A DNA stretch of 63,023 nt, the filler included, from Salisapilia sapeloensis CBS 127946 (Eukaryota > Protista > Oomycota): the NCBI GenBank assembly GCA_023334545.1. It is 7 parts of 7 records of this genome, joined end to end, with 100 filler letters (N's around TTAATTAATTAA, not from the genome) between each part and the next. Parts side by side here need not be neighbours in the genome. Positions count along the whole stretch, not along the records: positions 49,106 to 59,284 come from JAADVB010000448.1; 6 more parts are not named here. One strand, written 5' to 3'. Of the stretch, positions 49,106 to 59,284 are shown piece after piece. Each line of letters begins with the position of its first letter. The first letter of the stretch is position 1. The notes under the pieces are model-generated. The model was not told the DNA's origin and made no database searches. It saw only the letters and a list, made by a program, of their open reading frames with translations. The position numbers and the translations under genes were made by a program.

Positions 49106-50304
49106 TCTGTTCTACACGTACTACAAATATCCCATCCAGTCTCTTCGTCAGACGCCAGCTCATGATCTAGAAGTAGCGCATCAAACAATGAAAATATCTA
49201 TCCTGCTTATAACCCAAGTTACCGTTGGTACGATCTACCAGTGGTGGTCTCAAACTCGGATTCGTCTCATATAGAAAGAGACTGAGGTTGACTGCGCATA
49301 GAGAGCGATGATGTGATAAGTGATGCGCTTAAATCTTAATTTTTTGGATACAGAGTCAAAGGCTGGACAGGATTCAGAAGAACCGGGACAAATGAATACG
49401 GAAGGGTACACTCTGTAGCTGAAGATCGTTGCCACTCCATATAAACTATATTCGTGACATCTAGTCGCTCACACATCATGGCTGCTTTACTCGAAGATGG
49501 ATACCACTTGATGGATGGTAAAAACGTGGAAGTCGGAAAACGTTCTTTTGTTGTGCTCTGCAGCTTCCTCTTGTCATGCGTAGTCTGCATGAAGCCTTGC
49601 GTACATGCACGACCATTGCATGTCCATAAAATCTTTCTGTCGCATAGGATGCTCATTCATGTCTACTCTGCTAGGCCGAAGTATGGTTGAGAAATCCGGC
49701 ATATCCTAGAGGTTTTAACACGTAGGAGATGACTTATTTGAAATAGTTGGCGAGATTAGTAAGCGTATACACTCTATTTCATCTCCTGCACTCTATGTAG
49801 ACAGCTAAAGCCTACTTTGATGATATTAGACAACTATGGAAAAATATTGTTCAAGTCCCACTGTCTCAGTCACTTGCGACTCACTGATATTCCGATCCGC
49901 GTCGAGCGAAAGTAGCGTCCCACTCCAGGTCAAGCACTGGGTACACATTATCAGACCGCAGATCATGCGTTAGATGGTCATGGAGACGTTAGCCTCTCCT
50001 TTCGACTAAGCCACTGGAGGGATCAAATTCCATGGCTTCGAGCAAACTCCACATGAATGAATACACTTTAGTGATTTAGACACTGCATGCTGCTCCCCAA
50101 GTTACCACTCTTCCTACAATCGGTTTCCACATGACATCTTAAGATCTGTCAACCCATTGCGAAGTGGATTGCTTCCATTTGCACTTGCGAAGGCGAACCT
50201 ATCTTCCTTCCGCTTGTCCTTGTCCTGTAGCAACCTCATTTTCGATCTTGCGTTCCAAGCCTCAAGGCATCAGCAAGAGGTCACGTCTTGCGAAGGGATT
50301 CGTC

Positions 50305-52584
50305 ATGTCAACGCTTCAAAGTACGGACGCGAGACTATGGAAGTACGCGGAAGCGGGCGATGTAGAAGGTGTTCACAGAATGATTGACGACGACTGTAAT
50401 GTGAACTGGGCGAACGATTGGGGTAAAAACTCGGCATCACCATTAATGGCGGCAGCATCAGGCGGTCATGTCAAAGTGATCGCACTCTTGCTAAAGCATA
50501 ATGCAGACGTGAAGATGACCGATGAATACAAGTCTACCGCACTTCACTACGCTGCTCAGCATGGACAAGCGGAAGCTGCGCAGTTGCTAATAAACTCTGG
50601 ACCGAGCATCGATAGGCGAAATAGAGAAGGTTGTACCCCACTGCATGTTGCCGCGAGAGAAGGAAACTTGGAGGTTGCAGCGATGTTACTACAAAACGGT
50701 GCGAGAGTTAACATCGCAGGTGAATGGAACGCCACCCCACTCGACTTCGCAATCCGAGACAAACGAGTTGAGATGATAAAGCTCTTGGCTCAATGGGGAG
50801 CGAATCCAACCAGTAAAATTGGTTATCGTCCATGTCCGATCAAATTCGCCAAAGACAACCGTGATACAGCTCATTTGGTGTCGATTTTAAAAGAGTTTAC
50901 GAGTCATAAGAAAGCGGTGGACAGTGGTAAGCAAGAGACTGTGCAGGGCTTCTTACGTCAGTCTATCGCTGATAAGGATGTGAAACAGATGAAGAAAAGC
51001 TACAGGAAGATCAACAATCATACAAGTCGTTTCCAAGGTTCAGTGTGGCAGACTAAACTTCGTCGTGTCCTGGATGACCACAAGTTGGAAATGGTGTACT
51101 ATGCATTCAAGATAGATGAAGTTGAAACGATCGAAGCTATCTTCAATTGGATCAATGGCGAGCAATGGATTCGAACCGCGACCTTCTCGGATGGATCGAC
51201 CTTGTTACAACGAGCTCTGAGTCACCGAAAAGTGTTCGCCGTAACGTCCATGCTATCGCACGGACTGGACCCCTATGAAGGTTCGAAAGCCAGTCAGCCA
51301 CTGCCGCTCTTGTGCCACTCGACTTTACGCGTATCAGCTGACAAATTGATAGCTAGCTACAGAACGCTTCAAAAGGCGATAAACGGTCTACCTGAAGACG
51401 GCAAAAACGCTTTTACCCAACATATCCTTGACGATTTCAAAGTGGAGATGCTGTACGCTGCCTTCGAAACGAGTGATGAGGAAAAGAGAGACGCCATCAT
51501 CAGTTGGATTGATGATAAAGATTGGATCCAAACGGCCAAATATAGCGATGAATCGACATTGATGCAGCGTGCTGTGCGCTCACAGAATTGGACTGCCCTT
51601 CGGAAAATGGTACGCTATCGGATCGATCCTTACAAGCTTATTACGGAGAATCGACTCATACCTAAGGGAAAAGAGGAAGAGGAAAAGAACGATGAAACAC
51701 CACAGAAGATCATAGAAGCCATGACACTTGAGTATGAAGTATGTGCTATGAAACTTCTTGAGAGCCATGATATGCCGCCGACTGATAGAGGAGAGTTGAT
51801 GAACTCGATGCGCTTCTTTTCAACATGCGTGAGCAACGTCTGCTCCATCATCACGTTTGCTGTGGTAAACCTCCAAGAAGAAGGGAGGGATGCGTTTATT
51901 GAAAAATGCTTGGAGCTTCCCATGCTCCGTCGCTTTGTCTACGACAGGAGTGAGCGAGACGAGTACGTCAACTACTTGGCAGGCCTGAGAGCACAAGCCG
52001 TCATTACGAAGGAAAGAAGAGAACACTTTCGTATGGATGCAACAAATGTTAATGCAGAGAATACAGTGTGGGTACACGAGATCAAAGCTTCTGTCCAAAA
52101 GAACACCGAGCATCGTGAACACACCAAACATGGCTTGAAGAAACTTCGAGAGGAATTTGACAAACTTAAAGTGTCTCTAAGGAATTGGCAAGAGCAGCAA
52201 GCGGAACATGACAAAATTCAAAACATCATCTCGGCCATCTGTGGCTGCATGATTTTCTTCGGAGCTCCTTCGGTGGGGAGACTAGTACAGGCTATTATCA
52301 ATATGATGAGCCCAAAGCTAGTACTCGACGCCATCACAGAAAGATCGGGCAGTCATGAAAACAAACTAGTGCTCAAGCAAGAAGTTAGGTGCATGATTGA
52401 AAGCTCTGGCATTCCCCCTCAAGAATTTGTCGCCAAGTTGAAAGAAGCCGCAGACAGAGTCAGCGACAAAGACGAGGAGCCATCCGTTGCACAAGCTGCT
52501 GGTGGGGCTCATACACGTCGTCAAAGTGCAAACGCGTATTCTCGAGACGAAGAAGAGAACGACCCACCTAACGCCATGAATTAA
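50305..52584 (+). CDS. Ankyrin-repeat protein with a duplicated central module and a coiled-coil/hydrophobic C-terminus; intronless
   Basis: About 5 canonical ANK repeats (SPLMAAA, TALHYAA, TPLHVAA, TPLDFA), two copies of LDD.K.EM.Y.AF...WI....WI.TA..SD.STL.QRA, then a coiled coil. Confidence 0.85.
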   Translation: MSTLQSTDARLWKYAEAGDVEGVHRMIDDDCNVNWANDWGKNSASPLMAAASGGHVKVIALLLKHNADVKMTDEYKSTALHYAAQHGQAEAAQLLINSGPSIDRRNREGCTPLHVAAREGNLEVAAMLLQNGARVNIAGEWNATPLDFAIRDKRVEMIKLLAQWGANPTSKIGYRPCPIKFAKDNRDTAHLVSILKEFTSHKKAVDSGKQETVQGFLRQSIADKDVKQMKKSYRKINNHTSRFQGSVWQTKLRRVLDDHKLEMVYYAFKIDEVETIEAIFNWINGEQWIRTATFSDGSTLLQRALSHRKVFAVTSMLSHGLDPYEGSKASQPLPLLCHSTLRVSADKLIASYRTLQKAINGLPEDGKNAFTQHILDDFKVEMLYAAFETSDEEKRDAIISWIDDKDWIQTAKYSDESTLMQRAVRSQNWTALRKMVRYRIDPYKLITENRLIPKGKEEEEKNDETPQKIIEAMTLEYEVCAMKLLESHDMPPTDRGELMNSMRFFSTCVSNVCSIITFAVVNLQEEGRDAFIEKCLELPMLRRFVYDRSERDEYVNYLAGLRAQAVITKERREHFRMDATNVNAENTVWVHEIKASVQKNTEHREHTKHGLKKLREEFDKLKVSLRNWQEQQAEHDKIQNIISAICGCMIFFGAPSVGRLVQAIINMMSPKLVLDAITERSGSHENKLVLKQEVRCMIESSGIPPQEFVAKLKEAADRVSDKDEEPSVAQAAGGAHTRRQSANAYSRDEEENDPPNAMN

Positions 52585-53856
52585 GAAAGCGATGACGATA
52601 AGCATCTAGACCAAGATGAACCGTCCGAGCCCATGCAGTTGGCTAAGACGTATATTCGATTGCAGGTGATGGAAAACAAATTGCTTAGTGGGTCGAGTCA
52701 ATTATGCTAAGTGGTTTATGTGTGGATGAGATGATGAACCTCTAAAGAAGCGTAATAAGAATCAATGCACATAATTTCTTTTTTAGACGATGAGCACAGT
52801 TTGTGACAAGTATGATTTAATATATTATATTTGTGTTCTCGTTGGTATGCTTGCCCTTCAGATAGATAGGTGAGCATTGTAAAAAGACAAGCGCTGTTTT
52901 GTTCTTAAGACCAAAAGTTAAGCGTACTGATGGCCACATTTCTGTACGTTCTTTTGAATACTATAGCTTATATGATAAACTATTGATAAATCATTTGGAT
53001 GTCAAAGTGGTAACATTCTAGCTTCCAATGCTTATACATGTAGAGTTTTCGATCTGTCAAGTTGAATACTTTAAACCTCACGGTTTGGTCGCAAACCAAT
53101 GTCTATGTACAGTAGTCGGACTATCCCAACGCAGCTAATTAAATCATCACTCTGCCAGGAAAAAGAGTGTTAGCGCAATAGTTTGCATATTTCTACATTT
53201 CATTATTGATATTAATAAAGCTTTTCCGTTTAAGTGTTGCTAGCTCGACATTAGCACAAGAAAGCTTTAGCTATAATAGGGTTTGCATTTGAGGGCAATT
53301 GTCATAAAAAACAAGAACGCCGGTACTTTAAAATCACTTGTGCGACCGATACATTTGATCATCACGAAAGAGCACCGGTCCCAACATCGGGAGCCCTAGA
53401 GTACTTTAGCGGCCTCCCTCTACTCGAAAGACTCCGGAAAAATCGAGCAACCACATCACCATTCTTCGGAATGGTTGAGTTCACCGGAGGTGGGTTCCAA
53501 GGGTAGACGTTTAATAACTAGCTGCTAATATAATTCCGGCTGTGCCACAACAAAATCACTTCGGCTACTCATTGGAAAATTATGATCATATGGTACCGTC
53601 ACAAATATATATAACAGATCGGTTCAAATAATGCAAAAGCTAAACGAAACACGAATTAACTGACAAAGTGCTGCAAACTCTTTAAAGTATGTGGAATGGG
53701 TGGAACAGTATGATACATCAAAATGCTAGCTCAGCAAAATAAAAGCAAGTAAATAATGAGTTACGCGATAGCACGATTTTATATCGTCACATAGGTTTCA
53801 CGCGTCTCGGGCGCCAGTTGCTTATCCCAAAATATAAAAATGTCGTAAAAAGATAA

Positions 53857-53929
53857 TGCCGCGACCCGGGATCGAACCGGGGACCTCAAGAACTTCAGTC
53901 TTGCGCTCTCCCAACTGAGCTATCGAGGC
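53857..53929 (-). tRNA. tRNA-Phe (GAA)
   Basis: GCCTCGATAGCTCAGTTGGGAGAGCGCAAGACTGAAGTTCTTGAGGTCCCCGGTTCGATCCCGGGTCGCGGCA, 73 nt. Intact A and B boxes and anticodon stem CAAGA/TCTTG, with one U4:C69 acceptor-stem mismatch. Confidence 0.9.
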
Positions 53930-55089
53930 ATCGATACAGTGACAGTAAACAATACTAATAAAAACAATACTTTAAAGTTACTGTCAAGTACTGATGCTGT
54001 ACTTGATAGTTTTCGTTTAACAGATTGGTTATATTTCACACTCGCAAAGTAGACCTATACTCGTTTCACTTTTAGATATGTGCCATGAATGCGCAAACTA
54101 CTTGCTTGCAGCGACGTTAATATCGCATCAAAATGTGAGTCACCTACACTCTTGAGTCCGTAAATATCGCTTTTCTCGTATTTCTGGTATCTTCTGACTC
54201 AATCATGTAGTCATCTATAAGAGCTTATGTTTTGTAGCCGCTGTCGATACAGAATCAACGAAATCATCTATAATACAGATGACGTTCGAATGGCTGGGAC
54301 CCTGCTTGATGCATACCCCCTAGTAGCTACTGTACTGATTCGGCACCACGCTGTCGATTTACCAATCTCGAGTGGGAAAGAATAAGAACGCATGAGGTTA
54401 TAGTTCTAAAGCTCGGACTGAGATTACGTCTCATGATCACGTAGTGAGAAAGCCGTATAAATAGCTCTGTTTTGCTACTCTCCAGAATATTTGTTCGTAA
54501 TCTTCTAAGGCCCTCAAGCCACAACTAGCATGCAAATTTTATCAGGATTCACTTTTCTATCACTGTACAGCTTGCTCTCTCTATAGAACGTAACTGCTAA
54601 CTCGTTTTAAGTAGACTTCACAAATATTATCTTGGTATGGATCTAGACGAGCATGACTTGTCAAGACATCTCGAAATTTACTCCAAAGAGCCTTCATGGT
54701 TTCGATGCGTGCTTCTACATGTTTTTGTAAGATAAATTTGTAATCTATATTTTGATTTCATTCCGTTGGGCCTTCCAAGAAACTGCACGACATGTACTTA
54801 ACTGACCAGATTATAGTTGGTCCATCAAATGCATAAAGAAAAGAGCGCTATTGCCAAGGCTAGAAAAAACATATTAATAGATCGGAACTGCAAGTATAAT
54901 ATATCCATCTATTTATTTTTGAAGTTATGTCGGCTAACTACACCCAACACCGCACGAAGCAGCAGCGTTAACTACAGAGCAGTCCGGAGTTGGCCCTGTA
55001 GTAGGAGCCCATGGGAACTGCAAATAACGGAGATTGCATTTATTCAATTGATAAGATTGCGGGTTAGACTGTAGATACAAACAGATAGT

Positions 55090-56350
55090 CTGGAAGTTGA
55101 TATGCCTCGTCAATAGCCCACAAGTATATTGAAATTCGTCAGACAATTTGTAAGGACTGGAGCACTAATTTGCCATCGAGTAGCGGTTCATAGAGCAAGT
55201 GTGGTATTTAATTGCTCAAGGTCCACATCGTTGCTTGGTTTGCAATTAGGACATCACTTGCTTGCAAGGATAAGAAGGTTGCCGAGTAAGACTCATTTAC
55301 AATCTGAATAATTGGCACATATTCACCTCATGATTCTAAATACTGGCGTCGCCTGGCAATAGCTTCATGCGTGAAGAAGTGCTGGTCGTACGCTCTTAAC
55401 CGAAGATGCAGTAGATTTCTCTGAACGCGACTCAAAAGAGAACTAGACGTTATGTTGGCGTATCACGTAGCAATTACTTGTATCTAATATATCCATCCAT
55501 AGGCATTGAATGAGGAAACTTTTCTAGATGCGCTCCACGTCAAAAGCCTTGATTTGTCTGTTGCCGGCAACATGCATCATTTCCATTTGTCTACGTGTAA
55601 CCTAGGTCGTAACCAACGTCGGAAAAGAAACCTCTGCTAAGACATAATCGTTTGCTTTGATGTTGGCGTAATGCACAAGATACAATGCTACTTTTTAACA
55701 GTAGCCCTAGTGATATAGCGCTTTTTTTCACATCAACTTCATAAAAATGTTCTCCATAATACCCGCTCGAGAATCCCCATTCCTTTAATGGACCCTAAAG
55801 TAAAACCTACCTCATTTAGCATTTCCACTTACAAGTCTCACATCTGCGCGCAGTATAAGTAAATTCCACAGTTCATTATCCCTGCTTTCAAGTGTGTCTG
55901 AGAAATGCGGTCAAATTAAAATCAACCTAGAACGTACTCACCAAGTCTCTCACAATAAAAGGAAGCTATATACGTGATTTATCGATGTAATGCCTAAAGT
56001 ATATGGACTGTAGCATCCACTTATCTGAAGCGTCATTTACAGTGCGATGTAGAAATTATGTTATTATGGTGCTATGTAAACACCAAACAAATTGACATGC
56101 CTTAAATCGGTTCTAGTAAACTTTCCGTCTTCGCACCAAAAGCAGTAGGATGGGATATTAAATCTCTTACCAGATCATCGAGCCCACAGGCACACAGTAG
56201 CAAACTATCATAAATAATCTTAAATATTCTACAACTCAAGACAATATAACATTCATACAATCAGAGGTATAGCTCATAGTGTGTGCAATACCGACCATTA
56301 TCTCCCAAAAGGGTCTTACGTAAACTGATTGTTCGCAACGTCAAGCCTTT
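55090..56350 (-). mobile_element. Decayed Ty1/Copia RT + RNase H relic
   Basis: Collinear on the minus strand across frameshifts: (Y)GL..SG (about 56170-56190), YIAL-VND (56032-56051; YVDD), DLGE.VLG (55924-55947), LYLV..T-PNI (55659-55685; TRPDI), AFD.E (55532-55546), GYI (55487-55495), SRVQ (55421-55432), EAI (55358-55366), TK..DV (55224-55239; TKHIDV minus 2 nt), LTR (55105-55113; LTK). Spacings are close to the Copia consensus. Confidence 0.75.
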
Positions 56351-57269
56351 CTTTTTGAAATAGTCTTGCGTTTGTACCCATTCTGCAATGTATGTAAAGC
56401 TTTACATAATGAAATTAGCTACAGGATCGAATTATTATTTACAAAAAATGTATGGCAGTAGCATACTTATTTACAACGTCTCTTATTAAGCCTCTATATA
56501 ATAATTTGTTTAAAATGCTCGTGTTACATTTCTAATTATGTTCACATCTCTAGCTGTACTCCAAAGTACTGTATGTTAGATCATAACTTCTATTAAATAG
56601 CTTTAAAATCCACCAAATCTAATTACCATCACATAAGAATATATACAAAGTTTAAATGTTCAAAATCCACGAAACCGAAGATTATAACAGAATTGAGTTA
56701 ATAAATCAAAAGTAGTTATTAAGGTTAAAAAAAAGATATCGCGCATAGGGTTTGTGCTATACTGTACATTTACACAAAAAGCTAAATATACTTGTACAAT
56801 TATAAAAAAGTTTGTTATGCAATGTTAAATCAATATGCAAAAATTAGGTGTTGCAATTATTATGTAAGCTCTCATTTATTTTAAAATACACCAATAATTT
56901 ATATGAAAAAAATTGTATCACTTAAAATTCTAACACATAAAAACATTACGTATTAACTTTAGATATAAAATAACTAATACTACATATTATTTCAAAAAGC
57001 CACAATAATTTTCAGTATAGCCTTGTTCTTTATTTAAATCCAAATAAAGAACCTATCAAGCTGGTCTAATAAGAAACATTTAAATATATTAAAAACATAG
57101 AGATAAAAAAGCGAAATTATATTTTCTAAGTTGTATTTAAGTACACTTTAAATGCTATCAAAAAACAACAAAATTTACGAATTTACATTCTGTTAAAAAA
57201 CACTATTTCTTTTGATTATCTTAGCAGTATATAAGAAATTCATAACAAACAAAGAAACAAAAATATACA

Positions 57270-59140
57270 TTGGATTTACACTAACAAATAGATTTACAAT
57301 TTACATAAATAAAAATTTAAAATATGCTAGTTAACATATAAAATTAAAAATGCTAATCACAACAATATAGAACACTTTTATAATGTACTATACGTATTAA
57401 CCATTAACATTTTAAAAATTAATATATGTAAAGATAAGTTGTTTAATAAATGTATTTAAAAACAATGAAAATTTATGCAGCATTTGGCTGTAAGTATTAA
57501 GCAAAATTTATAACATTGTTTTGTAGTAATACATAACACTATAAAAAAATTTGTTTTAAAAGCATCTAAGTGTATGCGATATTTTTTATTGTTATCTAGT
57601 TGTAGCAATTGTTGCAAAAGTTTATGTAGCAAATATACAGAGTTTGTTGTTAGTATATAGTATTCAAGTCAATTATTGTATTATATTGACAACAAAAAAT
57701 TTGATAGGTGCCGCATGTTTTCTTTTGCATTTGTAGTAAGCAGTATTAATTTTAATAAAATGCTAAATTATTATAACATTATAATACCCTAAATTTATAA
57801 AGCATTGTTTCCAAAATTGTAAAGTATTTATTACAACACAGCTTACATTGTGACACATGATATTTTTTATTTTGAAATAATTTTAAATATTTTAGGCTGT
57901 TTGTTTACTTATAAAAGGGCTTGATATAAGCATACAAATAAGTTTTAAGCAATAATTTTAGTCTATGTTTGACAAATAGGTGGCTTGTATAAAACTTATA
58001 AAGCTACAAAAGCTTTAAAATAGCTATATTGTATTTTCTTGTAAATAGGTGCCTTTTAATTGTATTTAATTTTTTTATAGATGACGCTAACAGTCAAACA
58101 TATTTATAAAGTTTTGTAGCTTAATCTTTTGCTAAGTGTATTTTAATAGATTTAATTATATTCGTACACGTATAATAAATTTTACATTGTTAATATTTAT
58201 CTTGACAAAAATGTATTAGTTTCTATTATTAAGAAGCTGTAGTAACAAGTAAGCAATATCAAGTTTCTCACAAGCAGAATATATAAATGCTGCTTTATCA
58301 CTTGTTATATTTTACAGCTTTAGTAATGTAACTCATATAAAATATGTGCTGTAATGTCAAATACAGAACTGATACAAATATCATTTGTATATATAACATT
58401 TAGTGTCTGCATCTTTAAAATATTATTTTACGTATAAGATTTTTAATTTATATGCAAAGTTATATGCAATTTAAGTATATACACTTTTAAAGTACTAACA
58501 AATACGACTTTGTAAATGTGTGCTGTTTTTGGTTACAGTGTTTGACAAAATTGACATTCAATAAGCCTTTAATTAAACATAAAATAGAGTCAAAATACTT
58601 ATACGATATATAAATTTTAGTTTTTTTTCTTTTATTTTGATAAGCAGACAAACCTTTTGTTTTTTATTTTTGTTTTTTTAGCGTGAGTGTGCAACTAATT
58701 ATGTTGTTTGCATATTATACGTAGACACTCAAAAAAAAATTATTTTTTATGTATTTAATGTTTAAAACATTACTCAGAATTAAACTTTTGTGTCTTTAAA
58801 CGCAATGAACTTGAAGTTTACATTGTGATCTTGTCTTGGTTTATGTTGTAGACCTTCTAGAAAAGACAAGCACTGTATTACGTTGCTATTTTGCAAAAAT
58901 TTTAGGATTGATAGTGTTTTGATGGGATGTTCTCTACATGTTCTAGTAATATGGGTCAAAGCTACTGTCCAATACTGGTGATAATGTCTGAGTAAATTTT
59001 ACTAAAATATTCTGATACTCTAAATATGTTTGATTTATTTGTTGATGCTGATCACTTGTTATTAGCAAAGAATTATACATACGACATATTATTTTGTTTT
59101 CGTAAATAGCTAGTCTTGATGCTGGTCAAACGACTAGATA
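57270..59140 (+). mobile_element. Extremely AT-shifted Ty1/Copia relic (integrase - RT - RNase H order)
   Basis: Integrase TPQQNGVAERMNRTL-like codons with mostly G>A/C>T changes (57278-57319). YV*DF at 58429, SQNTY exactly 53 codons later in frame (consensus spacing), MYLM..T at 58749, FVDADH at 59038-59055, W-SKR-like at 59123-59134. Confidence 0.62.
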
Positions 59141-59284
59141 GAATTTAGAATTCAGTGACGTTGTTGCTCAAAGCTCTCCCTGAAGTGTTCTACTCTCTAA
59201 ATGTTTGTATGTGTTGATTGCTCGACCACTAGCTAATCTCAAAGAAGTTTCGGTTGCTCGACTTTTTGGTCTCACTTTCATGCA

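Follow-up and report, generated by a model that had tools for sequence, protein, structure and literature searches.

We analysed a window of 63,023 nucleotides (nt; the whole stretch of DNA under study, along which all positions are counted) from the oomycete Salisapilia sapeloensis CBS 127946 (GenBank assembly GCA_023334545.1). The window joins parts of seven records, and positions 49,106 to 59,284 come from JAADVB010000448.1. This 10-kb piece carries an intron-less gene for a 759-aa ankyrin-repeat protein (50305–52584, + strand), a transfer RNA (tRNA) gene for phenylalanine (53856–53930, − strand), an ordinary non-coding flank (52585–55899) and, at ~56400–59000, an AT-rich island of 2.3–2.6 kb with 20–26% GC in surroundings of 39–50% GC. 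In the island TpC/GpA, CpC/GpG and CpG are depleted and GpC is enriched, and this compositional anomaly is real, local and highly non-random. With moderate confidence, we attribute it to context-dependent C>T change that favours cytosines preceded by a pyrimidine.

An AT-rich island with a distorted dinucleotide composition

The island core (56600–58900) has 22.9% GC, is non-coding and is unique in the piece. Our recount of 57001–58020 gave C 109, G 114, AC 51, GC 30, TC 19, CC 8, GT 52, GA 23, GG 9 and CG 5, in agreement with the hand count of the first-pass annotation save for CC, which had been put at 9. The observed/expected (o/e) ratios in the same interval were 0.47 for TC, 0.49 for GA, 0.41 for CG, 2.46 for GC, 1.40 for CA and 1.19 for TG. 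Over the whole core, z-scores derived from 2000 mononucleotide shuffles showed enrichment of GC (+7.1), CA (+4.5) and GT (+3.8) and depletion of GA (−6.3), TC (−5.7), GG (−3.2), CC (−2.2) and CG (−2.1). The AG/CT o/e in the island was ~1.0, compared with 0.5 for GA/TC. TC and GA were depleted equally on both strands and in each half of the island, which excludes one-strand editing of the complementary DNA (cDNA) type.

The distortion followed AT-richness along the piece. In sliding 800-nt windows from 49106 to ~56000, TC/GA o/e lay between 0.9 and 1.3 and GpC o/e between 1.0 and 1.4; at ~56700–58700, TC/GA fell to 0.45–0.56 and GpC rose to 2.2–2.7. The signature was strongest at 57451–58400, where GpC o/e reached 2.6–3.0 and TC/GA o/e 0.34–0.65. 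A moderately AT-rich intergenic stretch (52706–53305, 35% GC) was free of the distortion, and no window approached island-like values in 50 kb from three oomycete genomes. The genic signature of the piece (TC/GA 1.2–1.3, GpC 1.0–1.15, CC/GG 0.7–0.8, TpA 0.56–0.7) matched that of the same 50 kb.

The edges of the island are ramps of 0.5–1 kb on either side and not junctions. Along the left ramp (55900–56599), GC fell from ~0.40 to 0.26 in step with a fall of TC/GA from 0.88 to 0.71 and a rise of GpC from 1.25 to 1.69. Along the right ramp (58901–59284), GC climbed and the signature faded up to the end of the piece, with TC/GA at 0.74 and GpC at 1.42 over 58306–59105.

Contexts of the surviving cytosines

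Per kb and relative to the flank, the best-surviving C contexts were ACA (1.71), ACT (0.81), GCT (0.74) and GCA (0.70), and the poorest were TCG (0.16), TCC (0.12), CCC (0.11) and CCG (0.06). TCA and TCT stood at 0.54 and 0.62 of the flank, and the CCN contexts ranged from 0.06 to 0.42. The GpC excess was spread evenly across TGCT/AGCA, TGCA and AGCT, each being 2.2–2.8-fold enriched. No k-mer lay far above a second-order Markov null in the island, and no periodicity of G/C positions was found there; together with this even spread across A- or T-flanked GpC and the lack of tandem repeats, these results rule out a satellite or founder motif as the source of the excess.

Surviving CpGs provide a test that needs no ancestral sequence. 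If a 5′ purine protects C, then RCGY sites (R, purine; Y, pyrimidine) are shielded on both strands, so that the survivors should be RCGY and not YCGR. Ten of the 20 island CpGs were RCGY and one was YCGR, compared with 42 and 41 in the flank (P = 0.02, Fisher test against the island) and 29 and 31 in the ankyrin gene (P = 0.01).

Six of the 20 surviving CpGs lie within ACGT (56949, 57393, 58169, 58431, 58720 and 58881). The motif ATACGTA, or its complement, occurs five times against 0.5 expected, which may exceed what the 5′-purine rule predicts on its own.

Strand asymmetry and a central flip

The two arms of the island differ in strand composition. The left arm (56600–57549, + strand) is rich in A and C, with 44.3% keto bases (G+T) over 56000–57549, and the right arm (57550–58900, + strand) is rich in T and G, with 55.4% keto bases over 57550–59284. 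Each of these two keto biases has P < 1e-5. Plotted cumulatively, (G+T)−(A+C) traces a V that bottoms out at 57549, close to where GC is lowest, and none of 5000 block permutations matched its depth.

In the island, the A–T and C–G skews were coupled whichever bin size was used between 75 and 300 nt (rho 0.52–0.86, P = 0.002–0.014); the flank, the ankyrin gene and two further oomycete loci showed no such coupling. Coupled skews are expected if strand-biased C>T/G>A change made the AT-richness, and this test, like that of the CpG survivors, requires no ancestor. On either side of ~57549, C>T is mildly more frequent on the strand that reads away from it. Templates for lagging-strand synthesis have this polarity around an origin, as do the non-transcribed strands in divergent transcription. 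The central flip and the graded edges fit a process linked to position at least as well as one linked to repeats.

Simulated decay from the flanking sequence

We simulated C>T/G>A decay from the piece's own non-coding flank (52700–56200) down to the GC content of the island, and scored simulated against observed sequence as G over 32 strand-symmetric trinucleotide classes. Context-free decay gave a G of 218. Decay of the CpA type, as in repeat-induced point mutation (RIP), gave 1012, far worse than no context at all, and a 5-fold preference for a 5′ pyrimidine gave 89. The best point on the parameter grid (G 61–64) had relative rates of 4 after T, 3 after C and 1 after G or A, a factor of 0.75 for a 3′ A and no CpG term. 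The ranking of models was unchanged when the ankyrin gene served as ancestor.

The one-parameter model predicted dinucleotide frequencies per kb close to those observed (in brackets): TC/GA 47 (49), AC/GT 108 (109), GpC 32 (28), CC/GG 12 (15), AA/TT 333 (324) and AT 116 (127). The context-free model put AA/TT at 297 and AT at 148. Context-free loss leaves the o/e of GC, CG, CC and GG unchanged and therefore cannot make the pattern. CpG-only and TCG-only processes cannot reach the observed loss, because they account for just 19% and 6% of the C/G in the flank, and CpG-only decay did not reproduce the island pattern. The 5′-pyrimidine preference accounts for GpC sparing and CpG loss without separate mechanisms, because only in GpC do both cytosines follow a purine. 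C>T change with this preference is the simplest sufficient model, albeit an unproven one drawn from the composition of a single 2.3-kb locus, and it holds up in two internal checks that are independent of each other, the rule for surviving CpGs and the coupling of the skews. The first-pass annotation had proposed C>T change with a 5′-pyrimidine preference and, in addition, a CpG preference. The pyrimidine part is sufficient, as judged by the model fits and the 10:1 ratio of RCGY to YCGR, and the separate CpG preference is unneeded, since the best fit lacks a CpG term.

Identity of the island and its neighbours

The island had been described in the first-pass annotation as a Copia fossil with surviving pol codons. 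We found no pol domain in 56300–59284. Among the 20 longest stop-free stretches of that interval, RVT_2, rve, gag and other transposon Pfam families gave no match at E ≤ 10, a weak test for a heavily decayed element, and ten flank stretches gave no transposon domain at E ≤ 1. Each of the six frames of 56200–59284 contained 67–94 stops per ~1028 codons, about the number expected by chance at 22% GC. The piece contained no direct repeats resembling long terminal repeats (LTRs), its longest direct repeat being 27 nt, and no tandem arrays. The identification as Copia is unsupported and nothing positive remains of it, although a very decayed element would escape these tests.

When the sequence was reduced to purines and pyrimidines, so that transitions became invisible, local alignment revealed no copy of the island elsewhere in the 10-kb piece and no direct or inverted relation between the island halves beyond shuffled controls. 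Hidden duplication within the piece, or inverted duplication of the arms, is rejected on these grounds. Ribosomal RNA (rRNA) and tRNA remnants were absent from the island at E ≤ 1 and no protein remnants were found, so that no positive sign of an organellar or viral donor emerged. A weak Rfam match at 57460–57524 (+ strand) to ceN109, a nematode C/D-box small nucleolar RNA (21.5 bits against a gathering threshold of 52, E = 0.08), is most likely a chance match in AT-rich DNA.

The flank, which served as the stand-in ancestor, has 39–43% GC apart from the 35% GC stretch that it includes, and no Pfam matches. Over the whole 3.7 kb from 52585 to 56300 (35–43% GC), we found no Pfam matches and no open reading frames (ORFs) over 85 aa, an unusually long ORF-free spacer for a compact oomycete-type locus. 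Its TC/GA of 0.9–1.0 and GpC of 1.2–1.4 lie slightly towards island values when compared with coding DNA. The tRNA-Phe (GAA) gene, of eukaryote type (Rfam, 61.8 bits) and with a T-run just downstream, stands alone in this spacer, ~2.5 kb from the left ramp of the island.

The protein encoded by the ankyrin gene has N-terminal ankyrin repeats and a C-terminal, non-ankyrin part for which an exhaustive HMMER search found six weak relatives. Five of the six were looked up, and the three clusters that were named are all oomycete, at 19–26% identity (Phytophthora aleatoria, cactorum and idaei; P. kernoviae; Pythium oligandrum); the top match carries a UniParc identifier alone. The 50 kb of comparison sequence came from three genomes represented in these named clusters. 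The relatives and the matching genic signature support an oomycete source, in a lineage distant from Peronosporales and Pythiales. The gene product itself has no database record, and word-based and Atlas searches with it returned nothing, or generic ankyrin matches or clusters alone. A segment of ~45 residues is duplicated within the protein (approximately residues 259–305 and 376–422), and its C-terminal region of ~250 residues occurs twice in one 1449-aa relative (P0121).

Discussion

The explanation that we favour is mutational: we infer that the island's composition was produced by C>T change and not by native design, with the flank taken to resemble the ancestor. Ordinary nuclear DNA would have lost ~40–50% of its G and C by C>T (G>A) transitions, cytosines after T or C being struck some 3–4 times more often than those after A or G. 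GpC would survive, and so look 2.5-fold enriched, as the cytosine on each strand has a 5′ purine. TpC/GpA and CpC/GpG would be consumed into TpT/ApA, and the loss of CpG outside RCGY would be incidental. The damage would carry a mild strand bias that flips in mid-island and would fade into the flanks. A plausible source is deamination of cytosines at one fixed place on the chromosome where the DNA is transiently single-stranded. Its strand polarity might be that of the template for lagging-strand synthesis near an origin, or of the strand left untranscribed in divergent transcription, and the sequence context fits an APOBEC-like (TpC/CpC) deaminase.

Several points weigh against this explanation. 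The best model still misfits (G ~62 on 31 classes), with ACA/TGT at 143 against ~101 modelled and ACT/AGT at 69 against ~98. The flank is a stand-in for the ancestor, and substitutions are read from composition rather than from an aligned ancestral or sister copy. The evidence comes from one locus of 2.3 kb. In the left arm the signature is weaker (GpC o/e 1.76, TC 0.72), although GC is lowest there. Strand bias appears at the scale of the arms, with its central flip and coupled skews, whereas the isolated surviving C and G show no fine-scale strand-coordinated clustering (runs test, z = 0.66). No enzyme of the AID/APOBEC clade is known in oomycetes. The uncharacterised deaminase-fold proteins reported from them (CDD/CDA-SAM-Tudor and DYW-like) are non-APOBEC (PMC3239186), and the literature holds that no RIP-like process has been demonstrated in oomycetes (PMC6414701). 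Our literature search found no report of oomycete AT-rich islands, of a RIP-like process or of short centromeres.

The alternative that survives best, possible though we think it less probable, is a native functional AT-rich chromosomal element, such as a short centromere, a GC-poor trough, a replication origin or a divergent non-coding promoter. Here the AT-richness would be kept by function and the dinucleotide bias would be secondary to local replication or transcription, so that this alternative overlaps with mutational decay in mechanism and differs on cause and purpose. The island has the features of short AT-rich centromeres and GC-poor troughs, as in Phaeodactylum and Plasmodium and as described in other lineages of the stramenopile–alveolate–Rhizaria (SAR) group (cited in PMC7082073), in being unique, gene-free, repeat-free and kb-scale, with graded edges and a skew switch at its centre oriented as at an origin; a tRNA gene also lies close by. 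However, selection for AT alone predicts neither the 2-fold gap between GA/TC (0.5) and AG/CT (~1.0) nor the 10:1 ratio of RCGY to YCGR. The sole mapped centromeres in oomycetes, those of P. sojae, are moreover unlike the island, spanning 115 to over 270 kb with normal GC and an abundance of transposons, Copia-like elements among them, and promoters in Plasmopara halstedii are reported to peak near 60% A+T, not at 78–80%.

Decayed foreign or organellar AT-rich DNA (a nuclear mitochondrial insertion, a virus or a symbiont) that kept its donor's composition is improbable. Its 21–25% GC would fall within the range usual for oomycete mitochondrial genomes, and it contrasts sharply with the 39–49% GC around it. 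Against this, no protein-domain, rRNA or tRNA remnant was detected even at permissive thresholds, the edges are ramps of 0.5–1 kb where an insertion would leave junctions, CC/GG is depleted rather than clustered, and the coupled skews flip symmetrically in mid-island. DNA of foreign origin that had been resident long enough for every gene signal to vanish should also have drifted to nuclear composition; it would not be expected to remain at 21% GC unless a local AT-driving pressure acted on it.

An artefact of assembly or sequencing, whether a chimeric join or a contaminant, is very improbable. Although a single public run contains the stretch, and is probably the source of the assembly, 91% of sampled words of 55300–59284, a segment that spans the left boundary, occur in that run's contigs; composition also shifts gradually on both sides, and DNA of normal signature resumes at the right end. 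Least probable of all is a Copia element inactivated by a fungal-type process (CpA-directed RIP, deamination of 5-methylcytosine at CpG, or TpCpG hypermutation), for although the island is AT-rich and gene-free with a TpA/ApT of 1.12, above the usual RIP threshold of 0.89, its CpA/TpG is enriched (o/e 1.2–1.4) instead of depleted, (CpA+TpG)/(ApC+GpT) is 1.04, context-free decay fits much better than the CpA model, CpG and TCG cytosines are too few for a loss of 42–50%, and Copia domains and LTRs were not found.

Oomycetes are major pathogens of crops and animals, and their genome plasticity is driven by transposons. If mutational decay is the correct explanation, a local C>T process of defined context would add a further level to the genome defences or chromosome biology known in these organisms, would suggest that a DNA deaminase has gone unrecognised and would alter the interpretation of AT-rich regions in oomycete assemblies; regions below 25% GC are sometimes filtered from such assemblies as contaminants. 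This one locus could be the first sign that oomycetes have a RIP-like or APOBEC-like mutator. A broader proposal, which we regard as doubtful, is that an oomycete distant from Phytophthora and Pythium possesses a locally targeted cytosine-deaminating process with a 5′-pyrimidine (TpC/CpC) preference that drives kb-scale regions to ~21% GC. If true, this would extend RIP-like or APOBEC-like genome mutators beyond fungi and animals for the first time, and the agent might be an uncharacterised stramenopile deaminase-fold protein. If the island is instead a short AT-rich centromere or origin, it would stand apart from the centromeres of Phytophthora, which are large and transposon-rich.

Comparison with known systems

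Ascomycete RIP (RID/DIM-2 dependent, of the Neurospora and Leptosphaeria type) likewise makes gene-free, AT-rich DNA by C>T/G>A change with extreme dinucleotide distortion, spreads into flanks and raises TpA/ApT. This index was 1.12 in the island and 0.94 in the flank (RIP threshold, ≥ 0.89), and (CpA+TpG)/(ApC+GpT) was 1.04 and 1.14, respectively (RIP threshold, ≤ 1.03). The island differs from RIP in that its context depends on a preceding T or C and not on a following A, in its enrichment of CpA/TpG, and in that no duplicated partner was found in the 10-kb piece. It resembles a hypermutated RIP region in outcome but fails RIP's defining context.

TpCpG hypermutation of transposons occurs in Pucciniomycotina. 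The type known from Microbotryum and rusts is like the island in having a 5′ T at the target, and few contexts in the island are as depleted as TCG (0.16 of the flank). Unlike that process, the losses in the island extend to TCA, TCT, TCC and all CCN, and the model needs no CpG term; TCG sites would explain at most 6% of the C/G of the flank.

Ultraviolet (UV) dipyrimidine damage shares with the island C>T change at the 3′ C of TpC and CpC, and the context that survives best, ACA, has a purine on each side of the C. The island differs from a UV signature in that the 3′-pyrimidine effect is inconsistent (GCT is spared and ACT is not), and 2.3 kb of affected DNA beside 3.5 kb of untouched non-coding DNA is hard for UV to explain.

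APOBEC3A and APOBEC3B target TpC and APOBEC3G targets CpC, with a replication-strand bias. The island is like AID/APOBEC footprints in its preference of ~3–4-fold for a 5′ T or 5′ C, which holds only if the flank adequately represents the ancestor, and in a central flip of strand bias with lagging-template polarity. Unlike those footprints, it lacks fine-scale strand-coordinated runs, and its scale, with about half of C/G affected over 2.3 kb, is far beyond a single episode. In context and strand behaviour, the systems closest to the island are APOBEC-type deamination of single-stranded DNA and UV dipyrimidine damage.

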